Sequence record: NC_031107.2
Strand: one strand, 5' to 3'
DNA length: 64,000 nt
Of the stretch, positions 505 through 4,940 are shown in pieces (position 1 is the first letter of the stretch; each line of letters starts with the position of its first letter). The translations under genes and the position numbers were made by a program. Below the pieces are notes generated by a model. The model made no database searches. It saw only the letters and a program-made list of their open reading frames with translations, and was not told the DNA's origin.

Positions 505-612
505 ACCTCAGGAAGAACCAAAACAGCTAGGGCTGCGGGATACGGTGTTGACGCTGTTTGGCCAACGCAAGAAATCGCCACCTATCCGCATGGCACCTGA
601 GTGAAGAATTCT

Positions 613-688
613 GGGGGAGTAGTTCAACTGGTAGAGCGTCGGTCTCCAAAACCGAATGTTGCAGGTTCGAGTCCTGTCTCCCCTGCCA
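613..688 (+). tRNA. trnW: tRNA-Trp (CCA)
   Basis: 76-nt cloverleaf: acceptor GGGGGAG/CTCCCCT, anticodon arm TCGGT-CTCCAAA-ACCGA, T loop TTCGAGT, encoded CCA. Confidence 0.95.
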
Positions 689-751
689 AATTTAGCCAGC
701 AAGAATGTGAGAAACCACGAGAGGACAATTGACCATTCGCTGGAGATTCTC

Positions 752-976
752 ATGAACTTGTATTTGCTAGAACGTGAAGACGATGTCGGTTACGACGAGT
801 TTGATTCCATAGTCGTTGCTGCTCCTACGGAGCAAGCTGCGCGCGCAACGAAGCCCAACCATGGGCGCTGGACTGATGTGTTTCGCAACGAAGACGGAGT
901 AATCCTGAGATGCAAACACATTGGCACAACGCACTTACCGGAAGGGGTCGTCCACGAATCGTTCAACGCAGGCTGA
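752..976 (+). CDS. small phage hypothetical protein (74 aa)
   Basis: ATG at 752 after GGAGA. The upstream part of the track ORF (656) overlaps tRNA-Trp and is rejected. Confidence 0.65.
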   Translation: MNLYLLEREDDVGYDEFDSIVVAAPTEQAARATKPNHGRWTDVFRNEDGVILRCKHIGTTHLPEGVVHESFNAG

Positions 977-1006
977 ATACCGGTGGGCTTCGGCCCACCA
1001 CACCTT

Positions 1007-1082
1007 GGGGCAATGGCTCGAGTGGTTAGGCGACGAATTGCAAATTCGGATCAGGTCGGTTCAAGTCCGGCTTGCCCCTCCA
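1007..1082 (+). tRNA. trnC: tRNA-Cys (GCA)
   Basis: Acceptor GGGGCAA/TTGCCCC, anticodon loop TTGCAAA, T loop TTCAAGT, encoded CCA. Confidence 0.9.
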
Positions 1083-1215
1083 ACACACTTGGCTCGGTGT
1101 GTTACTTTTGAAATAGAAAACCCGTAGAGCCTTTCGGGGGTGTTGCCAGATGGAGTGCTTGTTACTCTACGGTCTTTCACTCCTGAGCCCTGGCTCACCC
1201 ACCTAAAGGAAAATA

Positions 1216-1644
1216 GTGATGTTTGGATTCTTAAAGAAACGTTCTTCTCGTGCGATGTCTGAAATCAAAAAGTTCGACAAACGCGACCTGGCCGAAGCTG
1301 TGGTAAATGCTGCGTATCTGATTGCGTATGCTGACGGCGAGCTGGAGTCTTCCGAGAAAGCGAAAATCGAACAAGTGCTGCGCGCGAACCCGGTTCTCTC
1401 TAACTTCCAGAGTGAACTTAATGCTATCGCGTCCACGATCATTGCACAGCTGGAAGCCGACATCGACATCGGTCGTCGTGCTGCCCTTCGTCAGATTGCT
1501 GACGTGAAAGGCGACCAGCGTGAGTCCGAAGACGTGCTGGACGTGGCTGTTGCTATCGCCCGCGCGGATGGCGAAATCGAACCTGCCGAAGAAGCGATGC
1601 TGAAACAGATCGCCGAAGCGATGGGTCTGCGTTACGACGCCTAA
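1216..1644 (+). CDS. terB: TerB-family (tellurite-resistance/co-chaperone-like) protein
   Basis: Duplicated TerB-type motifs AYLIAYADGELESSEK and VAVAIARADGEIEPAEEAMLKQIAEAMGL; AAAGGA RBS. Confidence 0.8.
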   Translation: MMFGFLKKRSSRAMSEIKKFDKRDLAEAVVNAAYLIAYADGELESSEKAKIEQVLRANPVLSNFQSELNAIASTIIAQLEADIDIGRRAALRQIADVKGDQRESEDVLDVAVAIARADGEIEPAEEAMLKQIAEAMGLRYDA

Positions 1645-1647
1645 GCC

Positions 1648-1830
1648 ATGAAGCTGAAAACCAAGTTATACATCGCGGCCGCGTTGCTGCTGATGCTGCT
1701 TGGCAACTTCATAGGCCGTGCGTTTACGCTCATTGCCTACGTCGCTGTAATCAGCTTAGTAGCCTACCTGGCATGGCCAGTGATCAAAACCTTTGCCGCT
1801 AAGTCAAAAGCGAAGGCGAAGAAGGTCTGA
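1648..1830 (+). CDS. small two-TM membrane protein
   Basis: 60 aa with two hydrophobic segments and basic termini, located 3 nt after the terB stop. Confidence 0.65.
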   Translation: MKLKTKLYIAAALLLMLLGNFIGRAFTLIAYVAVISLVAYLAWPVIKTFAAKSKAKAKKV

Positions 1831-1892
1831 TTGATGGTGCGGGGTCGTTCCCCCGCACCTCCTCTAATTCTCATCTAAAAATAGGTATAATC

Positions 1893-2729
1893 ATGAGAAA
1901 GCTTCTAATCGGTTTAGTAGCAGCCATTAGCTTTAGCGCGTTTGCAGGACAGGACGTGACCATTACCACCGGTCAACAGGGTTTAACGTACAACGCCACG
2001 TACGGCGTTAATCTTGCCAGTGCTCTGAACGAGTTCGGCAACAAGTCCACAGTGGTACCGTCAAAAGGTTCCCTGGACAACCTGGATAAAGTGGCTGCCG
2101 GTACGGCGCAGCTCGGCTTTACACAGGCAGACGCATTCCAGTTCTGGCGCGCACAGCACCCGAACGAAGCTCAGAACGTAGACATCGTTGGCCAGTTGGG
2201 TGACGAGTGTGTCTTCGTGGCTGTGAAGAAAGACGGTAAGGTCGGTGATGAAGCTGACCTCAAAGACGGCATTAAGATTGCTGTCGGTGAACCGGACTCT
2301 GGCTCATACGCCAGTTGGCAATACCTGCAAGGTTTGGTGAAGCAGTATTCGAAAACCGAAACCTATGCGAAAGGCGGCATCCGTTCTCTGTCCAAAGTGG
2401 CCACGGGTGAATACGACGCGTTCATGTGGGTAAGTGCGCCGGGCAAACCTAATAAGTTTCTGGAAGCGGTTAACCAGGAGAGTTCAGGTCTGAAACTCAT
2501 CGACATGAACAACTGGAACGTCAACGACAAACTGCCTAACGGGCAAGCGGTCTACGAGAAGAAGTCCGCGAAAGTTGACAACAGCGCGTGGTTCGGTGGT
2601 GACGTTAAAGTCCCTTGCACCAAAACACTGGTAGTCGCTAATACCGATGCCGGTGACGATCTGCTGGAAGCCGTTTCATCCATCCTCCTGAAAAATGCAC
2701 CACGCATCATGGGGACGGCCAAACAATAG
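1893..2729 (+). CDS. secreted periplasmic-binding-protein fold, TAXI-TRAP receptor-like
   Basis: Signal peptide MRKLLIGLVAAISFSAFA; motifs ITTGQQGLTY, SKGSLDNL..V..G.AQLGFTQAD and IAVGEPDSGS resemble TAXI solute receptors. Confidence 0.7.
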   Translation: MRKLLIGLVAAISFSAFAGQDVTITTGQQGLTYNATYGVNLASALNEFGNKSTVVPSKGSLDNLDKVAAGTAQLGFTQADAFQFWRAQHPNEAQNVDIVGQLGDECVFVAVKKDGKVGDEADLKDGIKIAVGEPDSGSYASWQYLQGLVKQYSKTETYAKGGIRSLSKVATGEYDAFMWVSAPGKPNKFLEAVNQESSGLKLIDMNNWNVNDKLPNGQAVYEKKSAKVDNSAWFGGDVKVPCTKTLVVANTDAGDDLLEAVSSILLKNAPRIMGTAKQ

Positions 2730-3230
2730 CTGTGTGTTAATTGCACTGACGGGGCTGATATCCCTGTTGGAACGGTTTCATCTTTTGGGGTTGGATGAAG
2801 TGAAGAAACGTGGCACGCCAATAAGTCCACGTTAACCGGATTGCACAAAGAACTATCTGCGGGTAGGCAATCCTGCCGTTATGAACTTATCAGGTGACTA
2901 AACATGGAAGAGTTGTTCAGAGCGTTTCTGTACCGTATGGGTACCTGGTTGAAAGACCTCAAGCTCTGGAAGCTCGATACTTATTGGTTATCAGGATGTG
3001 GGACTGAACGCCATAAACCTGTTTTAGGACGAGAGTCCTCAACCCAGGCGACGTCTATTGTAGACGAAGGTCAAGCACCGGCCCATTAAGCCGACTCGCT
3101 GACATAGGCAACCTTCACCCCACAATCTGAATGTAACTGATGGGATTGAGTTCCCAGTGTGAATGAGCAGCAGTGTGCTGCAGTTGGCGCGGTACCTCAT
3201 ACGGCCGGTACGTCACGAAAAGAAAGTAAG
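2730..3230 (+). ncRNA. candidate large structured ncRNA (class unknown)
   Basis: About 500 nt with no convincing CDS and more than 10 consecutive hairpins, including GAAA and GAGA tetraloops; leads directly into the tRNA array. Confidence 0.4.
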
Positions 3231-3233
3231 TAG

Positions 3234-3301
3234 GGTTGGTGCTTGGAGGCGCTAAGACCGGAGTCCTGCTCTGGCTCAGAAGAAGAAGTCCATCAACCCC
3301 A
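3234..3301 (+). ncRNA. candidate tRNA-like RNA lacking a T arm, CCA-ended
   Basis: GTTGGTG/CATCAAC stem + C + CCA, with two internal hairpins. Confidence 0.4.
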
Positions 3302-3307
3302 CTTAAT

Positions 3308-3383
3308 GCGAGTATAGCTCAGCTGGTAGAGCATCTGGTTCCCAACCAGAGGGTCGTGAGTTCGAATCTCATTACTCGCTCCA
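3308..3383 (+). tRNA. trnG: tRNA-Gly (CCC)
   Basis: Acceptor GCGAGTA/TACTCGC, anticodon arm TCTGG-TTCCCAA-CCAGA, encoded CCA. Confidence 0.95.
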
Positions 3384-3491
3384 ATAAATCAATGACTTAT
3401 AGTGATTTCCCCATTTCGCTACAAGACTGCACCAATATATGTAAAACACCCAAGACGTGTGCGAATTCGAAGTTGAGTTCTCAGACGTATT

Positions 3492-3577
3492 GGCGCGGTA
3501 CTCAAGCGGTCAACGAGAGCAGACTGTAAATCTGTTGCCTTCGGGCTTCGTAGGTTCAAATCCTTCCCTCGCCACCA
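3492..3577 (+). tRNA. trnY: tRNA-Tyr (GTA)
   Basis: Class II tRNA with long variable arm, loop CTGTAAA, T loop TTCAAAT, CCA; one acceptor mismatch. Confidence 0.93.
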
Positions 3578-3583
3578 ATATTT

Positions 3584-3659
3584 GTTCCTGTCGTCTAGTG
3601 GTCCAGGACACCTGGTTTTCAACCAGGCAACCGGAGTTCAATTCTCCGCAGGAACGCCA
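3584..3659 (+). tRNA. trnE: tRNA-Glu (TTC)
   Basis: Acceptor GTTCCTG/CAGGAAC, anticodon arm CCTGG-TTTTCAA-CCAGG, CCA. Confidence 0.93.
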
Positions 3660-3664
3660 AACAA

Positions 3665-3810
3665 TGACACTGACTCACGCCGCCTTTGAGCAGCAGAAGA
3701 AGTCTGGCAGCCAATAAAAGCATCCACCGTCTACTGGGCCTGAGGGTCTCGGATAGAGGGTCGCTAAGCGCAGCCGTATAACTCCGTGGGATTCGGAGAA
3801 GTGTCACCCA
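3665..3810 (+). ncRNA. candidate 146-nt RNA with tRNA-like acceptor and T-like arm
   Basis: TGACACT/AGTGTCA + C + CCA; hairpin CTCCG-TGGGATT-CGGAG at the T-arm position; interior fold unclear. Confidence 0.4.
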
Positions 3811-3814
3811 TTAT

Positions 3815-3891
3815 AGAGCCGTAGTCGAGTTGGTTAAGACGCCTCCCTGTCACGGAGGAGATCGTGGGTTCGAGCCCCATCGGTTCTGCCA
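3815..3891 (+). tRNA. trnD: tRNA-Asp (GTC)
   Basis: Acceptor AGAGCCG/CGGTTCT, anticodon arm CCTCC-CTGTCAC-GGAGG, CCA. Confidence 0.95.
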
Positions 3892-3897
3892 AACATC

Positions 3898-4018
3898 AGT
3901 CACTTAATCTCAATCGGATAGAGACAGAACATTACTTCAACAACACTAGGGTGTCCATGGCACGTTGGCGTTGTGTAATGCGATGAGGTTACAGGTTCGA
4001 GTCCTGTAGTGGCTACCA
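3898..4018 (+). ncRNA. tRNA-shaped RNA with ~45-nt extended anticodon arm (121 nt)
   Basis: Acceptor AGTCACT/AGTGGCT + A + CCA, D arm TCTC/GAGA and canonical T arm ACAGG-TTCGAGT-CCTGT; no 7-nt anticodon loop. Confidence 0.65.
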
Positions 4019-4026
4019 TTTTAAAT

Positions 4027-4103
4027 TGTCTCGTAGCTCAGTTGGTTAGAGCGCTCGCCTGATAAGCGGGAGGTCGGTAGTTCAAGTCTACTCGAGACAA
4101 CCA
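4027..4103 (+). tRNA. trnI: tRNA-Ile (GAT)
   Basis: Acceptor TGTCTCG/CGAGACA, loop CTGATAA, CCA. Confidence 0.95.
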
Positions 4104-4110
4104 GCATTAT

Positions 4111-4191
4111 GGGAACATTGTCACCATCAGTGATGACAGGAGTGATGGATTCGTCCCCACTCGACTGGGTGGAAGCCTGGGTGTTCCCCCA
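4111..4191 (+). ncRNA. non-canonical cloverleaf with G-1:C73 and CCA
   Basis: G + GGAACAT/GTGTTCC + C + CCA; three internal arms, the middle one capped by a TTCG tetraloop instead of an anticodon loop. Confidence 0.5.
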
Positions 4192-4197
4192 TTTAGT

Positions 4198-4275
4198 GGT
4201 GTATGTAGTTCAGCTGGTTAGAATACTGGCTTGTGACGTCAGTGGTCGAGAGTTCGAGTCTCTCCATACACCCCA
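4198..4275 (+). tRNA. trnH: tRNA-His (GTG)
   Basis: G-1, acceptor GTGTATG/CATACAC, C73, loop TTGTGAC, CCA. Confidence 0.95.
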
Positions 4276-4280
4276 GTTCC

Positions 4281-4370
4281 GGAGAATTGTCCGAGTGGCT
4301 GAAAGAGCTCCCCTGCTAAGGGAGTGGTGGCGCAAGCTGCCCGAAGGTTCGAATCCTTCATTCTCCGCCA
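4281..4370 (+). tRNA. trnS: tRNA-Ser (GCT)
   Basis: 90-nt class II tRNA, loop CTGCTAA, long variable arm, G73, CCA. Confidence 0.95.
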
Positions 4371-4377
4371 AATCTAT

Positions 4378-4498
4378 AGTCGCCTAGCTCAAGATTAGAG
4401 CACACCTTACGACCAATACTGACCAACACGCACCGCGGTGCAATAATGGCGGTGGCGTAGTGGTGCGGTTACCGGTTCAAGTCCGGTGGTGACTTCCC
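4378..4498 (+). ncRNA. second tRNA-shaped RNA with extended anticodon arm (121 nt)
   Basis: Acceptor AGTCGCC/GGTGACT, D arm GCTC-AAGATTA-GAGC, T arm ACCGG-TTCAAGT-CCGGT; ends T-CCC; ~45-nt paired insertion in the anticodon arm. Confidence 0.65.
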
Positions 4499-4504
4499 TA
4501 CAAT

Positions 4505-4583
4505 GAACCCGTTAGCTTGAGGAAAAAGCACCCGACCCATAATCGGATTTTTCACTGGTTCGAATCCAGTACGGTGTTCGCGA
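4505..4583 (+). tRNA. degenerate tRNA with CAT anticodon (Met/Ile2-like, possible pseudo-tRNA)
   Basis: T arm ACTGG-TTCGAAT-CCAGT and anticodon arm CCGA-CCCATAA-TCGG, but C33, a bulged acceptor and a 3-prime end GCGA instead of NCCA. Confidence 0.5.
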
Positions 4584-4588
4584 TTTAT

Positions 4589-4664
4589 GACTCTGTAGTT
4601 CAGTTGGTAGAACGGATGACTGTTAATTATCTCGTCGCAGGTTCGAGTCCTGCCGGAGTCGCCA
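4589..4664 (+). tRNA. trnN: tRNA-Asn (GTT)
   Basis: Acceptor GACTCTG/CGGAGTC, anticodon arm GATGA-CTGTTAA-TTATC, CCA. Confidence 0.95.
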
Positions 4665-4669
4665 CTTTT

Positions 4670-4940
4670 GTGTTACCCTTGTCCCGGAGACATTCCTAAG
4701 ACAAATCCATCCATGGTCGGGGGTAGCACGAAAAACCATTCGCTGTTCCGTATCCTTTACGTTAGTCTCCAGACGCGTTTCGGGGTACGGGATGGTGAAC
4801 CACTTTCTGGTTGCATCATCATTTCCGTGAACCCTGCCTGGTGCGTTGGTGCGGATGTAACCGGAATCAATTAGCCCATGCCGATGCGCTAAATGTCTTC
4901 CGAACGCGACCCGCGTTCTGCCCAGGAAGACGCTCCTGTT
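4670..4940 (+). ncRNA. run of long GU-rich stem-loops, candidate small RNAs
   Basis: 11-, 17- and 13-bp closing stems at 4670-4729, 4739-4799 and 4805-4866, followed by CCA, CCA and TCA; two further hairpins to 4940. Confidence 0.45.

Follow-up and report, generated by a model that had tools for sequence, protein, structure and literature searches.

Arrays of tRNA genes in phage genomes are usually taken as lists of decoders, and whatever ARAGORN or tRNAscan misses within them stays blank. What, then, is the nature of an 81-nt slot of this kind (4111-4191, + strand) that lies between tRNA-Ile(GAU) and tRNA-His(GUG), inside such an array and on the strand of its tRNAs? The window considered here, by which I mean the whole 64,000-nt stretch of DNA that was analysed (NC_031107.2), comes from Erwinia phage vB_EamM_Asesino (KX397364.2, identical in sequence and with the same coordinates). 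The GenBank record of the phage carries no annotation at 4111-4191. Asesino is a 246-kb jumbo phage of the genus Erskinevirus and builds a phage nucleus (PMC13282480, PMC12908238). Its tRNA array occupies positions 600-4700 and contains 11 tRNAs, all on the + strand, according to ARAGORN and Rfam. The genes around the array, as classified by Pfam, encode TerB, an NMT1/TAXI-type binding protein, and unknowns, and a Pfam search of these neighbours for a partner protein found nothing related to tRNA.

The explanation I favour, with modest confidence, is that 4111-4191 is the gene for a small non-decoding RNA of the array, shaped like a tRNA, matured as a tRNA, and acting as a mimic. The parts of this reading differ in strength. 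It is very probable that the slot contains a real RNA gene maintained by selection, and probable that the RNA is matured like a tRNA. That it works as a mimic or decoy is proposed tentatively. The RNA in the blank slot, in short, is conserved and covarying, and just two things about it are those of a tRNA, the general outline and the acceptor end.

An earlier note on this DNA, made from the letters alone, had described the slot as a four-way cloverleaf. All of the pairings it listed are present on direct reading, and the minimum free energy (MFE) fold is exactly the listed four-way junction, in agreement with the consensus of the alignment discussed below (Table 1).

Table 1. Coordinates of the predicted arms of the element and of its neighbours in the Asesino tRNA array. 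Positions are those of the window.
Feature	Position	Strand	Remarks
tRNA-Ile(GAU)	4027..4103	+	Upstream neighbour, CCA-ended (ARAGORN, Rfam, GenBank record)
Spacer from CCA of tRNA-Ile to element, 7 nt	4104..4110	+	U4110 directly before G4111
Terminal (acceptor-like) helix, 8 bp, 5' strand	4111..4118	+	GGGAACAU (DNA GGGAACAT); G4111 is the 'G-1'-type top base
D-position hairpin, 5 bp, UGUCA/UGACA	4119..4138	+	10-nt loop CCAUCAGUGA (DNA CCATCAGTGA); TGTCA 4119-4123 with TGACA 4134-4138
Middle (anticodon-position) arm, GAGUG/CACUC, internal AU/C, GGA-UUCG-UCC	4140..4162	+	GAGTG 4140-4144 with CACTC 4158-4162; GGA-TTCG-TCC inside at 4147-4156
T-position hairpin, 6 bp, CUGGGU/GCCUGG	4165..4180	+	GGAA (GNRA) tetraloop cap (MFE fold, alignment consensus); CTGGGT 4165-4170 with GCCTGG 4175-4180, including 3 G.U
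Terminal helix, 3' strand	4181..4188	+	GUGUUCCC (DNA GTGTTCCC); C4188 ('C73'-type) pairs with G4111 as the outermost pair
CCA, single-stranded	4189..4191	+	Directly 3' of the helix; separate discriminator base absent
Spacer from element to G-1 of tRNA-His(GUG), 6 nt	4192..4197	+	Direct reading, tRNA calls
tRNA-His(GUG)	4198..4275	+	Downstream neighbour, with encoded G-1:C73 and CCA; used to compare acceptor ends

No linker separates the D-position stem from the terminal helix, and the D-position loop lacks G18G19. The T-position hairpin stacks straight onto the terminal helix, producing a continuous stack of 8+6 = 14 bp. The arm pairing CTGGG with CCTGG, thought at first to be weak, does pair, but with its sixth base pair and tetraloop cap it is stronger than supposed. 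The Asesino copy contains four G.U pairs and its relatives an extra one (G5.U), and these pairs assign the RNA to the + strand, that of the tRNAs. Considered by itself, the sequence from Asesino is unexceptional in its folding (z = -0.75, with 47 of 200 shuffles folding equally well), and so the case for a real feature rests on the relatives.

Despite its shape, the element is not a tRNA. ARAGORN makes no tRNA call at 4111-4191 in its default mode or with -ps80. Rfam 15, applied to the copy in the window and to three homologs, returned nothing at the gathering score or at E<=10, including for RF00005 and RF01852, and a known RNA family or ribozyme is rejected on the same grounds. The idea of an unusual but real tRNA was also rejected: ARAGORN in -ps60 or mitochondrial mode forces a call of 'His(AUG)', based on nucleotides that are not conserved in the relatives. 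The element possesses no D-loop GG, no T-loop UUCRANY, no anticodon loop and no linker before the first arm, hence the elements that form the elbow of a tRNA are missing. When covariance model R1 was run elsewhere, its sole weak matches (10-16 bits) were genuine tRNAs, and the likeness of the element to tRNA is for that reason one of topology only.

The middle arm, where an anticodon would be expected, was described in the earlier note as lacking an anticodon and capped by a UUCG loop, of a kind known to be stable. The first description stands: there is no usable anticodon arm, that is, no 7-nt loop with U33 and a purine at 37 on a 5-bp stem, and no loop displays GUG in either the MFE fold or the consensus. 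The second applies in part. A UUCG cap can indeed be drawn in Asesino, but in Asesino only, where it arises through a 1-nt deletion, and it is not a trait of the family. The closing pair in Asesino is A-U and not the C-G from which the hyperstable motif derives its special stability; the element has no conserved 4-nt loop closed by C-G, as C(UUCG)G tetraloops do. The Asesino loop may be drawn as the 4-nt UUCG or alternatively with 6 nt. The relatives have one extra base, giving a consensus 7-nt loop AUUCGYA closed by G-C, or else a bulge; the middle arm of SPAsTU ends in an open 12-nt loop and that of pEa_SNUABM_29 places an A opposite a C. As judged from the aligned copies, the conserved part of the loop is the sequence GAUUCG. 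The loop of the relatives is formally U33-UCG, with a pyrimidine at '37' and a stem of about 8 bp that contains a bulge, and because of these two features decoding is very unlikely in them as well.

The same module was found by blastn in Seoulvirus, with 80-91% identity to Asesino: in the SPFM series, Proteus phage 7, SPLA1a/5c, SPAsTU, and Erwinia phage pEa_SNUABM_29. Its carriers include SPN3US-like Salmonella/Proteus phages, and metagenome contigs of both Asesino-like and SPN3US-like type bear it too. Altogether the family amounts to five distinct sequences, which represent two or three lineages. Searches by blastn with the Asesino and pEa_SNUABM_29 copies reached only Seoulvirus and Asesino, and pattern scans of IMG/VR, metagenomes and GTDB genomes added only near-identical copies (contigs L003, L032, L045 and L051). 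Three other pattern matches (L008, L030 and L062) were judged to be due to chance, and the 'two-piece' matches in SPFM6 and SPFM10 proved to be scrambled sequence close to the ends of the records, not variants. Covariance model R1 found no module in Machinavirus arrays or in Stratton.

The module is sharply bounded. Pairwise identity is 80-95% within the element versus 50-57%, a background level, in the 80-nt flanks on each side, and the conserved block begins with G1 and ends with the 3' tail. It is absent from the closest relatives of Asesino, Stratton and phiEaH2 (EaH2), where an ordinary tRNA-Met(CAU) occupies the same slot, and it must therefore be dispensable within its own genus. An origin of the element from that tRNA-Met was considered and rejected, as the two have zero alignable similarity.

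Do the relatives preserve the fold as well as the sequence? Standard pairs are found in 98.5% of the cells of the alignment (five sequences), the homologs fold with z-scores from -2.0 to -2.9, and RNAalifold yields the same four-way fold. Two-sided compensatory changes occur at five pairs. Two of these belong to the terminal helix (7:73 and 8:72) and three to the middle arm (30:53, 31:52 and 32:51; numbering by columns of alignment A4). That many compensated pairs were reached in only 1 of 500 column shuffles, and all controls with a slid register scored lower. The earlier note had staked its reading on stems that covary, and the terminal and middle helices do so. In the former, the variants are AU/GC and UG/CG/UA at the two covarying pairs, while G1:C is invariant. 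In the middle arm, the three two-sided pairs belong to the outer 5 bp; the evidence for the inner part is weaker, and GAUUCG is invariant. The D-position arm is invariant in sequence across lineages apart from one A>U change, a mismatch, in SPLA1a, and the T-position arm is invariant save for a U>C at 4170 that retains pairing. These two arms carry no covariation signal because their sequence never varies, and for these two of the four helices the evidence is purely thermodynamic. Both arms, and GAUUCG as well, are nevertheless under strong sequence constraint.

It is thus conservation that lifts the element above chance, in the form of the z-scores of the homologs, the identity of the element relative to its flanks, and the compensatory changes. 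On the evidence of the aligned sequences, 4111-4191 is a conserved module with sharp boundaries that lies on the same strand as the tRNAs, and compensation has kept both its terminal helix and its middle one. A protein-coding explanation was rejected, since the only ORF (4109-4387) runs across both the tRNA-His and the tRNA-Ser gene, and since Asesino and the relatives differ by an indel of 1 nt.

These same observations weigh against the view that the element has no function of its own, being either a neutral spacer or a tRNA gene in decay, left over in a mosaic array. The tRNA arrays of these phages are mosaic, and that of Asesino contains a clear remnant at 3935-4022, which contig L003 lacks although it is identical in other respects; moreover, the closest relatives lack the element and its folding energy in Asesino is unremarkable. 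A relic, however, would not be expected to retain such identity across genera next to flanks at background, nor to have its substitutions clustered in helices and compensated. True relics retain T-arm sequence, and the element has no leftover similarity to any tRNA model. I consider decay or neutrality a most improbable explanation.

The acceptor end invites a more specific interpretation. The proposal of a His-type acceptor is borne out by the sequence: an 8-bp helix topped by G:C and followed by CCA is the geometry of bacterial tRNA-His. The top pair, whose conservation in homologs had been suggested as a check, is G1:C78 in 5 of 5 distinct homologs, and in all copies G1 is preceded by U. 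CCA is encoded in four of the five; in pEa_SNUABM_29 the tail reads UCG, and since the tRNA-Asn of that phage likewise has no encoded CCA, the tail of the element follows each phage's own tRNA habit. The tRNA-His of Asesino ends in the same way as the element, with U, G-1:C73 and CCA. It also resembles the element in strand and in array spacing, and differs from it in having a GUG anticodon, a 7-nt loop on a 5-bp stem, the D-loop GG, a T-loop, and an acceptor/T stack of 13 bp as opposed to the element's 14. Bacterial RNase P keeps G-1 on pre-tRNA-His owing to the G-1:C73 pair and CCA. This pair is the main identity element for HisRS, C73 being unique to tRNA-His in E. coli, and HisRS, among the few synthetases able to act without the anticodon, charges minihelices that bear it. 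A His-type reading of the acceptor end is legitimate as a reading of sequence. That the element is actually histidylated is unlikely.

The claim may be extended to function, such that HisRS charges an RNA that retains G4111 and the histidylated form, proof against anticodon nucleases, is the active one, whether by sequestering HisRS, by donating His, or as a decoy for toxins that act on aminoacyl-tRNA. The terminal helix, with its invariant top pair and direct CCA, is after all the end of the phage's own tRNA-His, and minihelices suffice for charging. Nonetheless, a G:C pair that extends a helix is by itself a weak signature, one homolog has no encoded CCA, and the 14-bp stack of acceptor and T-position arms, with the elbow missing, is unlike tRNA-His. 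A second RNA of the Asesino array (3665-3813, described below) also ends in C-CCA yet has no G-1, and the C-CCA tail may be a general feature of processing. As for the immunity to anticodon-loop nucleases that had been suggested, an uncuttable RNA that does not decode has no obvious benefit unless it serves as a decoy or competitor. Nor is adjacency to tRNA-His kept. The earlier note's placement of the element before tRNA-His is correct for Asesino but not for the relatives: in SPAsTU, tRNA-Gln lies upstream of the element and tRNA-His is not nearby, and in SPN3US-like phages it has no canonical tRNA as a neighbour and sits in a non-coding stretch of about 1.2 kb with few canonical tRNAs. All told, a function through histidylation appears distinctly unlikely.

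In the mimic that I favour, the RNA would be co-transcribed with the tRNAs of the array and exported from the phage nucleus. Host RNase P would cut 5' of G4111, as it does for tRNA-His, and 3' trimming or CCA repair would leave a compact 81-nt RNA with all three side arms closed by short loops. The acceptor end, the invariant D- and T-position arms, and GAUUCG would together provide the mimicry, by which the RNA would occupy, or compete for, a factor that handles tRNA. Candidate factors are HisRS, a tRNA nuclease or toxin directed at the acceptor/CCA or at the body of tRNA, and a processing enzyme. Given what is published on anti-phage attack on tRNA (see below), a role as decoy is plausible. 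Since the T-loop/D-loop elbow is missing, RNase P and other tRNA-binding proteins would recognise the RNA less well than a tRNA.

Data on RNA came from four small transcriptomic runs of one study, which hold an SPN3US-like phage. The data consist of assembled contigs from standard libraries, and such libraries under-represent small structured RNAs. Contigs span the Seoulvirus copy (L032:2128-2209) at a depth about that of its neighbours, which, the data being contigs only and DNA carry-over possible, is compatible with transcription. The libraries do hold RNA, since the depth elsewhere in the L032 locus is 10-50 times greater. In these assembled contigs, neither a discrete species of 81-82 nt nor defined ends at the element were seen. 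Upstream of the element, an RNA of 125 nt bounded by adaptors was found (L032:1750-1874).

The adaptor-bounded RNA has a bearing on another possible role, that of processing punctuation, in which a tRNA-shaped handle recruits RNase P and 3' processing to free neighbouring RNAs and the excised RNA is a by-product. Precedents for such handles are mascRNA for MALAT1 and the tRNAs of mitochondrial transcripts. The setting in SPN3US-like phages, where the 125-nt RNA lies within the non-coding stretch with few tRNAs, is what one might look for in punctuation, and the helix, CCA and U(-1) of the element are features that bacterial RNase P uses. In Asesino, though, the flanking tRNAs already supply cleavage sites, and a handle needs no 10-nt loop invariant across genera, no GAUUCG and no arm capped by GNRA. 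I regard this role as improbable.

How does the element compare with known systems? Like the element, T4 rnaC and rnaD are non-tRNA RNA genes within a phage tRNA cluster. Their products, the species 1 and 2 small stable RNAs, are processed together with the tRNAs of the operon, and neither is known to have an assigned role. The product of rnaC has a tRNA-type T-arm near its 3' end, with the canonical T-loop kept. The T4 RNAs differ in being 119-139 nt long and in not being four-way cloverleaves, neither of which is true of the element. Homology to them was rejected, since covariance model R1 gave the T4 tRNA region a score of less than 9 bits and the folds are different.

The T4 genes are also a precedent for the possibility that the element is a structured RNA outside tRNA biology, either a protein scaffold or a regulator that base-pairs through CCAUCAGUGA or GAUUCG, and that rides the operon for its expression and for the formation of its ends, as the products of rnaC and rnaD may. 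It is in the loops and in whole arms that the element is invariant, not in the acceptor sequence, as might suit such an RNA. But the element has retained a cloverleaf topology, ends in CCA and is packed exactly as a tRNA would be. All this speaks against such an origin, and I find the possibility very improbable.

There are also non-decoding mimics of tRNA, among them the tRNA-like domain of tmRNA, the module of YrlA (a bacterial Y RNA), mascRNA, and the tRNA-like structures (TLSs) at the 3' ends of plant viral RNAs. What they offer to tRNA enzymes, as the element would, is a tRNA-like acceptor or body that takes no part in decoding. Some of these are charged, tmRNA by AlaRS and the viral TLSs by ValRS, HisRS or TyrRS, the tobamovirus type being the one that can be histidylated; mascRNA is cut by RNase P and receives CCA. 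All four keep the T-loop elbow or a pseudoknotted acceptor, in contrast to the element, which has a GNRA tetraloop instead. Non-canonical acceptor branches are known in tRNA-Sec (8/5) and in allo-tRNAs (8/4 and 9/3), some of them in phages (PMC5389517). The element shares with these an 8-bp acceptor helix within a cloverleaf. They differ in that their branch is 12-13 bp long and they decode; their T-loop and anticodon loop are canonical, and their variable arm is long. The branch of the element, by contrast, is 14 bp and capped by GGAA. The element is outside the families of tRNA, of tmRNA-type mimics, and of rnaC/rnaD, since the loops that define them were tested for and are absent. A literature search for a paper on the element, or on anticodon-less tRNA-like RNAs in these phages, did not find one.

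The element is not the only RNA without an anticodon in these arrays. A second is encoded at 3665-3813 of Asesino and is conserved in both Stratton and pEa_SNUABM_29; it combines a 7-bp terminal helix, after which come C and CCA, with a T-like hairpin. A third, at 4379-4498, is annotated as 'tRNA-Ile(aat)' and has canonical acceptor, D and T arms, but where the anticodon arm would be it has a rod of 63 nt. In SPFM4, a tRNA body that scores 40.9 bits (L004:1766-1835) has an anticodon arm of 4 bp with a 3-nt loop, and the same body is present in SPAsTU with a long insert. In an RNA of Stratton (L002:4154-4215) and another of pEa_SNUABM_29 (L006:1594-1657), an arm of 6 bp is closed by GUAA or a 6-nt loop, and the acceptor sequences are different. 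The occurrence in the same arrays of several cloverleaf RNAs that lack an anticodon loop and are structurally conserved suggests a class rather than an accident, and 4111-4191 looks like the most derived member of what is apparently a habit of these phages.

A habit of this sort calls to mind the contest over tRNA between phages and their hosts. Phage tRNAs can counter defences that target tRNA, as T5 tRNAs do against PARIS and retron PtuAB, and as do anticodon-loop variants (PMC11464382, PMC11555353, PMC10264068). Those tRNAs are decoders that replace cleaved host tRNAs. For the element, which does not decode, the only options would be to serve as decoy, as competitor or as inhibitor, and such a mode has yet to be described. 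Anti-phage immunity strikes tRNA bodies, anticodon loops and arms, and CCA tails, and no viral answer to the cleavage of tRNA tails is known (PMC12851939, PMC13056530, PMC12445682, PMC10264068). One may imagine that the nucleus-forming phages of Erskinevirus and Seoulvirus make anticodon-less look-alikes (4111-4191, 3665-3813, 4379-4498 and their relatives) as decoys or inhibitors, which would sequester host factors able to recognise tRNA. The targets would be immune nucleases and toxins directed at tRNA, engaged through the acceptor end, the CCA tail or the body, and, for the His-ended member, HisRS. I offer this wider idea as a conjecture of rather low probability.

If the RNAs are made and stable, they would be viral tRNA mimics of a new class, and in the very group of phages (Asesino, SPN3US) that serves as a model for the phage nucleus. 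If, in addition, they act as a set of decoys, they would represent RNA-based counter-defence of a kind not yet described, at a time when many anti-phage systems have lately been shown to act against tRNAs, at their anticodon loops, their anticodon arms and their CCA tails. The family offers a natural substrate for asking which features besides an acceptor helix are required by RNase P, by the CCA-adding enzyme and by HisRS, and it bears also on how small RNAs exit from the phage nucleus. At a minimum it merits a place in Rfam, and annotation in some 35 phage genomes. At present, no RNA annotation of the module was found in the records of the relatives, and in SPFM1 a CDS labelled 'hypothetical protein' overlaps the match to it.

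In the 121-nt gene annotated in GenBank as tRNA-Ile(aat), the acceptor, D and T arms are canonical, but a 63-nt rod-like hairpin takes the place of the anticodon arm and the 3' tail is not CCA. Despite the annotation, neither ARAGORN nor Rfam, run on the window, called a tRNA there. A near-identical copy is present in Stratton, one of the closest relatives, which lacks the element (the anticodon-less tRNA-shaped RNA before tRNA-His).

Related phages also contain tRNA bodies and cloverleaves without an anticodon loop (see table). The anticodon arm of the SPFM4 body is reduced to CCUC-UUC-GAGG, and its SPAsTU counterpart carries a structured insert of about 40 nt at the same site; in Proteus phage 7 a body of this type is annotated as 'tRNA-Asp'. 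The cloverleaves of Stratton and pEa_SNUABM_29 have a 6-bp arm at the anticodon position, capped by GUAA in the former but by a 6-nt loop in the latter. Their acceptor sequences are unlike, yet paired in each phage.

Features of the tRNA array and its relatives (positions in the window unless a phage is named)
Feature	Position	Strand	Basis
Interspersed protein genes	1219-1644 and 1893-2729	+	Pfam
Non-coding RNA candidate, ~150 nt	3665-3813	+	Conservation, terminal helix, tRNA-like 3' end
Apparent tRNA 3'-half remnant	3935-4022	+	T-arm and ...CUACCA
GenBank 'tRNA-Ile(aat)', 121 nt	4378-4498	+	GenBank annotation
tRNA-Met(CAU)	4506-4579	+	33.7 bits
tRNA body, shortened anticodon arm	SPFM4 1766-1835		RF00005 (Rfam tRNA model), 40.9 bits
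Counterpart of SPFM4 body	SPAsTU 1634-1742		Same body plus insert
Unannotated cloverleaf, canonical T-arm	Stratton 4154-4215		z -3.5
Unannotated cloverleaf, canonical T-arm	pEa_SNUABM_29 1594-1657		z -3.9

The non-coding RNA candidate is unannotated and lies between tRNA-Glu and tRNA-Asp. Its 7-bp terminal helix (UGACACU/AGUGUCA) is followed by C and then CCA, and a T-like hairpin, CUCCG-UGGGAUU-CGGAG, adjoins the 3' strand of that helix. The candidate is conserved in Stratton and also in pEa_SNUABM_29, the tail there being CCU.

Judged from its sequence, the stretch at 3935-4022 looks like the leftover of a tRNA 3' half: a T-arm (ACAGG-UUCGAGU-CCUGU) leads into ...CUACCA, and no 5' acceptor strand matching this half is present. 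The whole insert that contains it, 3893-4026, is missing from an otherwise identical metagenome contig, which leaves 9 nt between tRNA-Asp and tRNA-Ile. The remnant was also the source of a spurious match to YrlA in the Rfam search of the window.

Most tRNAs of the array score 48-72 bits, and the lowest score belongs to tRNA-Met(CAU), whose 3' tail lacks a terminal CCA. Its Seoulvirus homologues in SPFM4 (1838-1909, 30.6 bits) and SPAsTU (1744-1815) are likewise low-scoring and are annotated as tRNA-Ile or Ile2. Stratton gp12 (3595-3674), with the anticodon loop CUGUCAC, is tRNA-His(gtg) according to GenBank but tRNA-Asp(GUC) according to ARAGORN; I consider the GenBank label probably a mis-annotation.

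In several SPFM records (SPFM6 and SPFM10 among them) the element is broken up and rearranged near the record ends, its 3' half preceding its 5' half, which looks like an artefact of assembly or terminal repeats rather than biology. The protein genes interspersed in the array encode a TerB-domain protein and a solute-binding protein of the NMT1/TAXI type; the small ORFs around them found no match in Pfam.

RNA-seq contigs over 1750-1874 of an SPN3US-like metagenome contig (SPFM4 1125-1249), a non-coding stretch upstream of the element, carry sequencing adaptor at both ends and so indicate a discrete RNA of about 125 nt. A very deep RNA-seq signal at 1075-1253 of the same contig matches the small ORF after tRNA-Trp.
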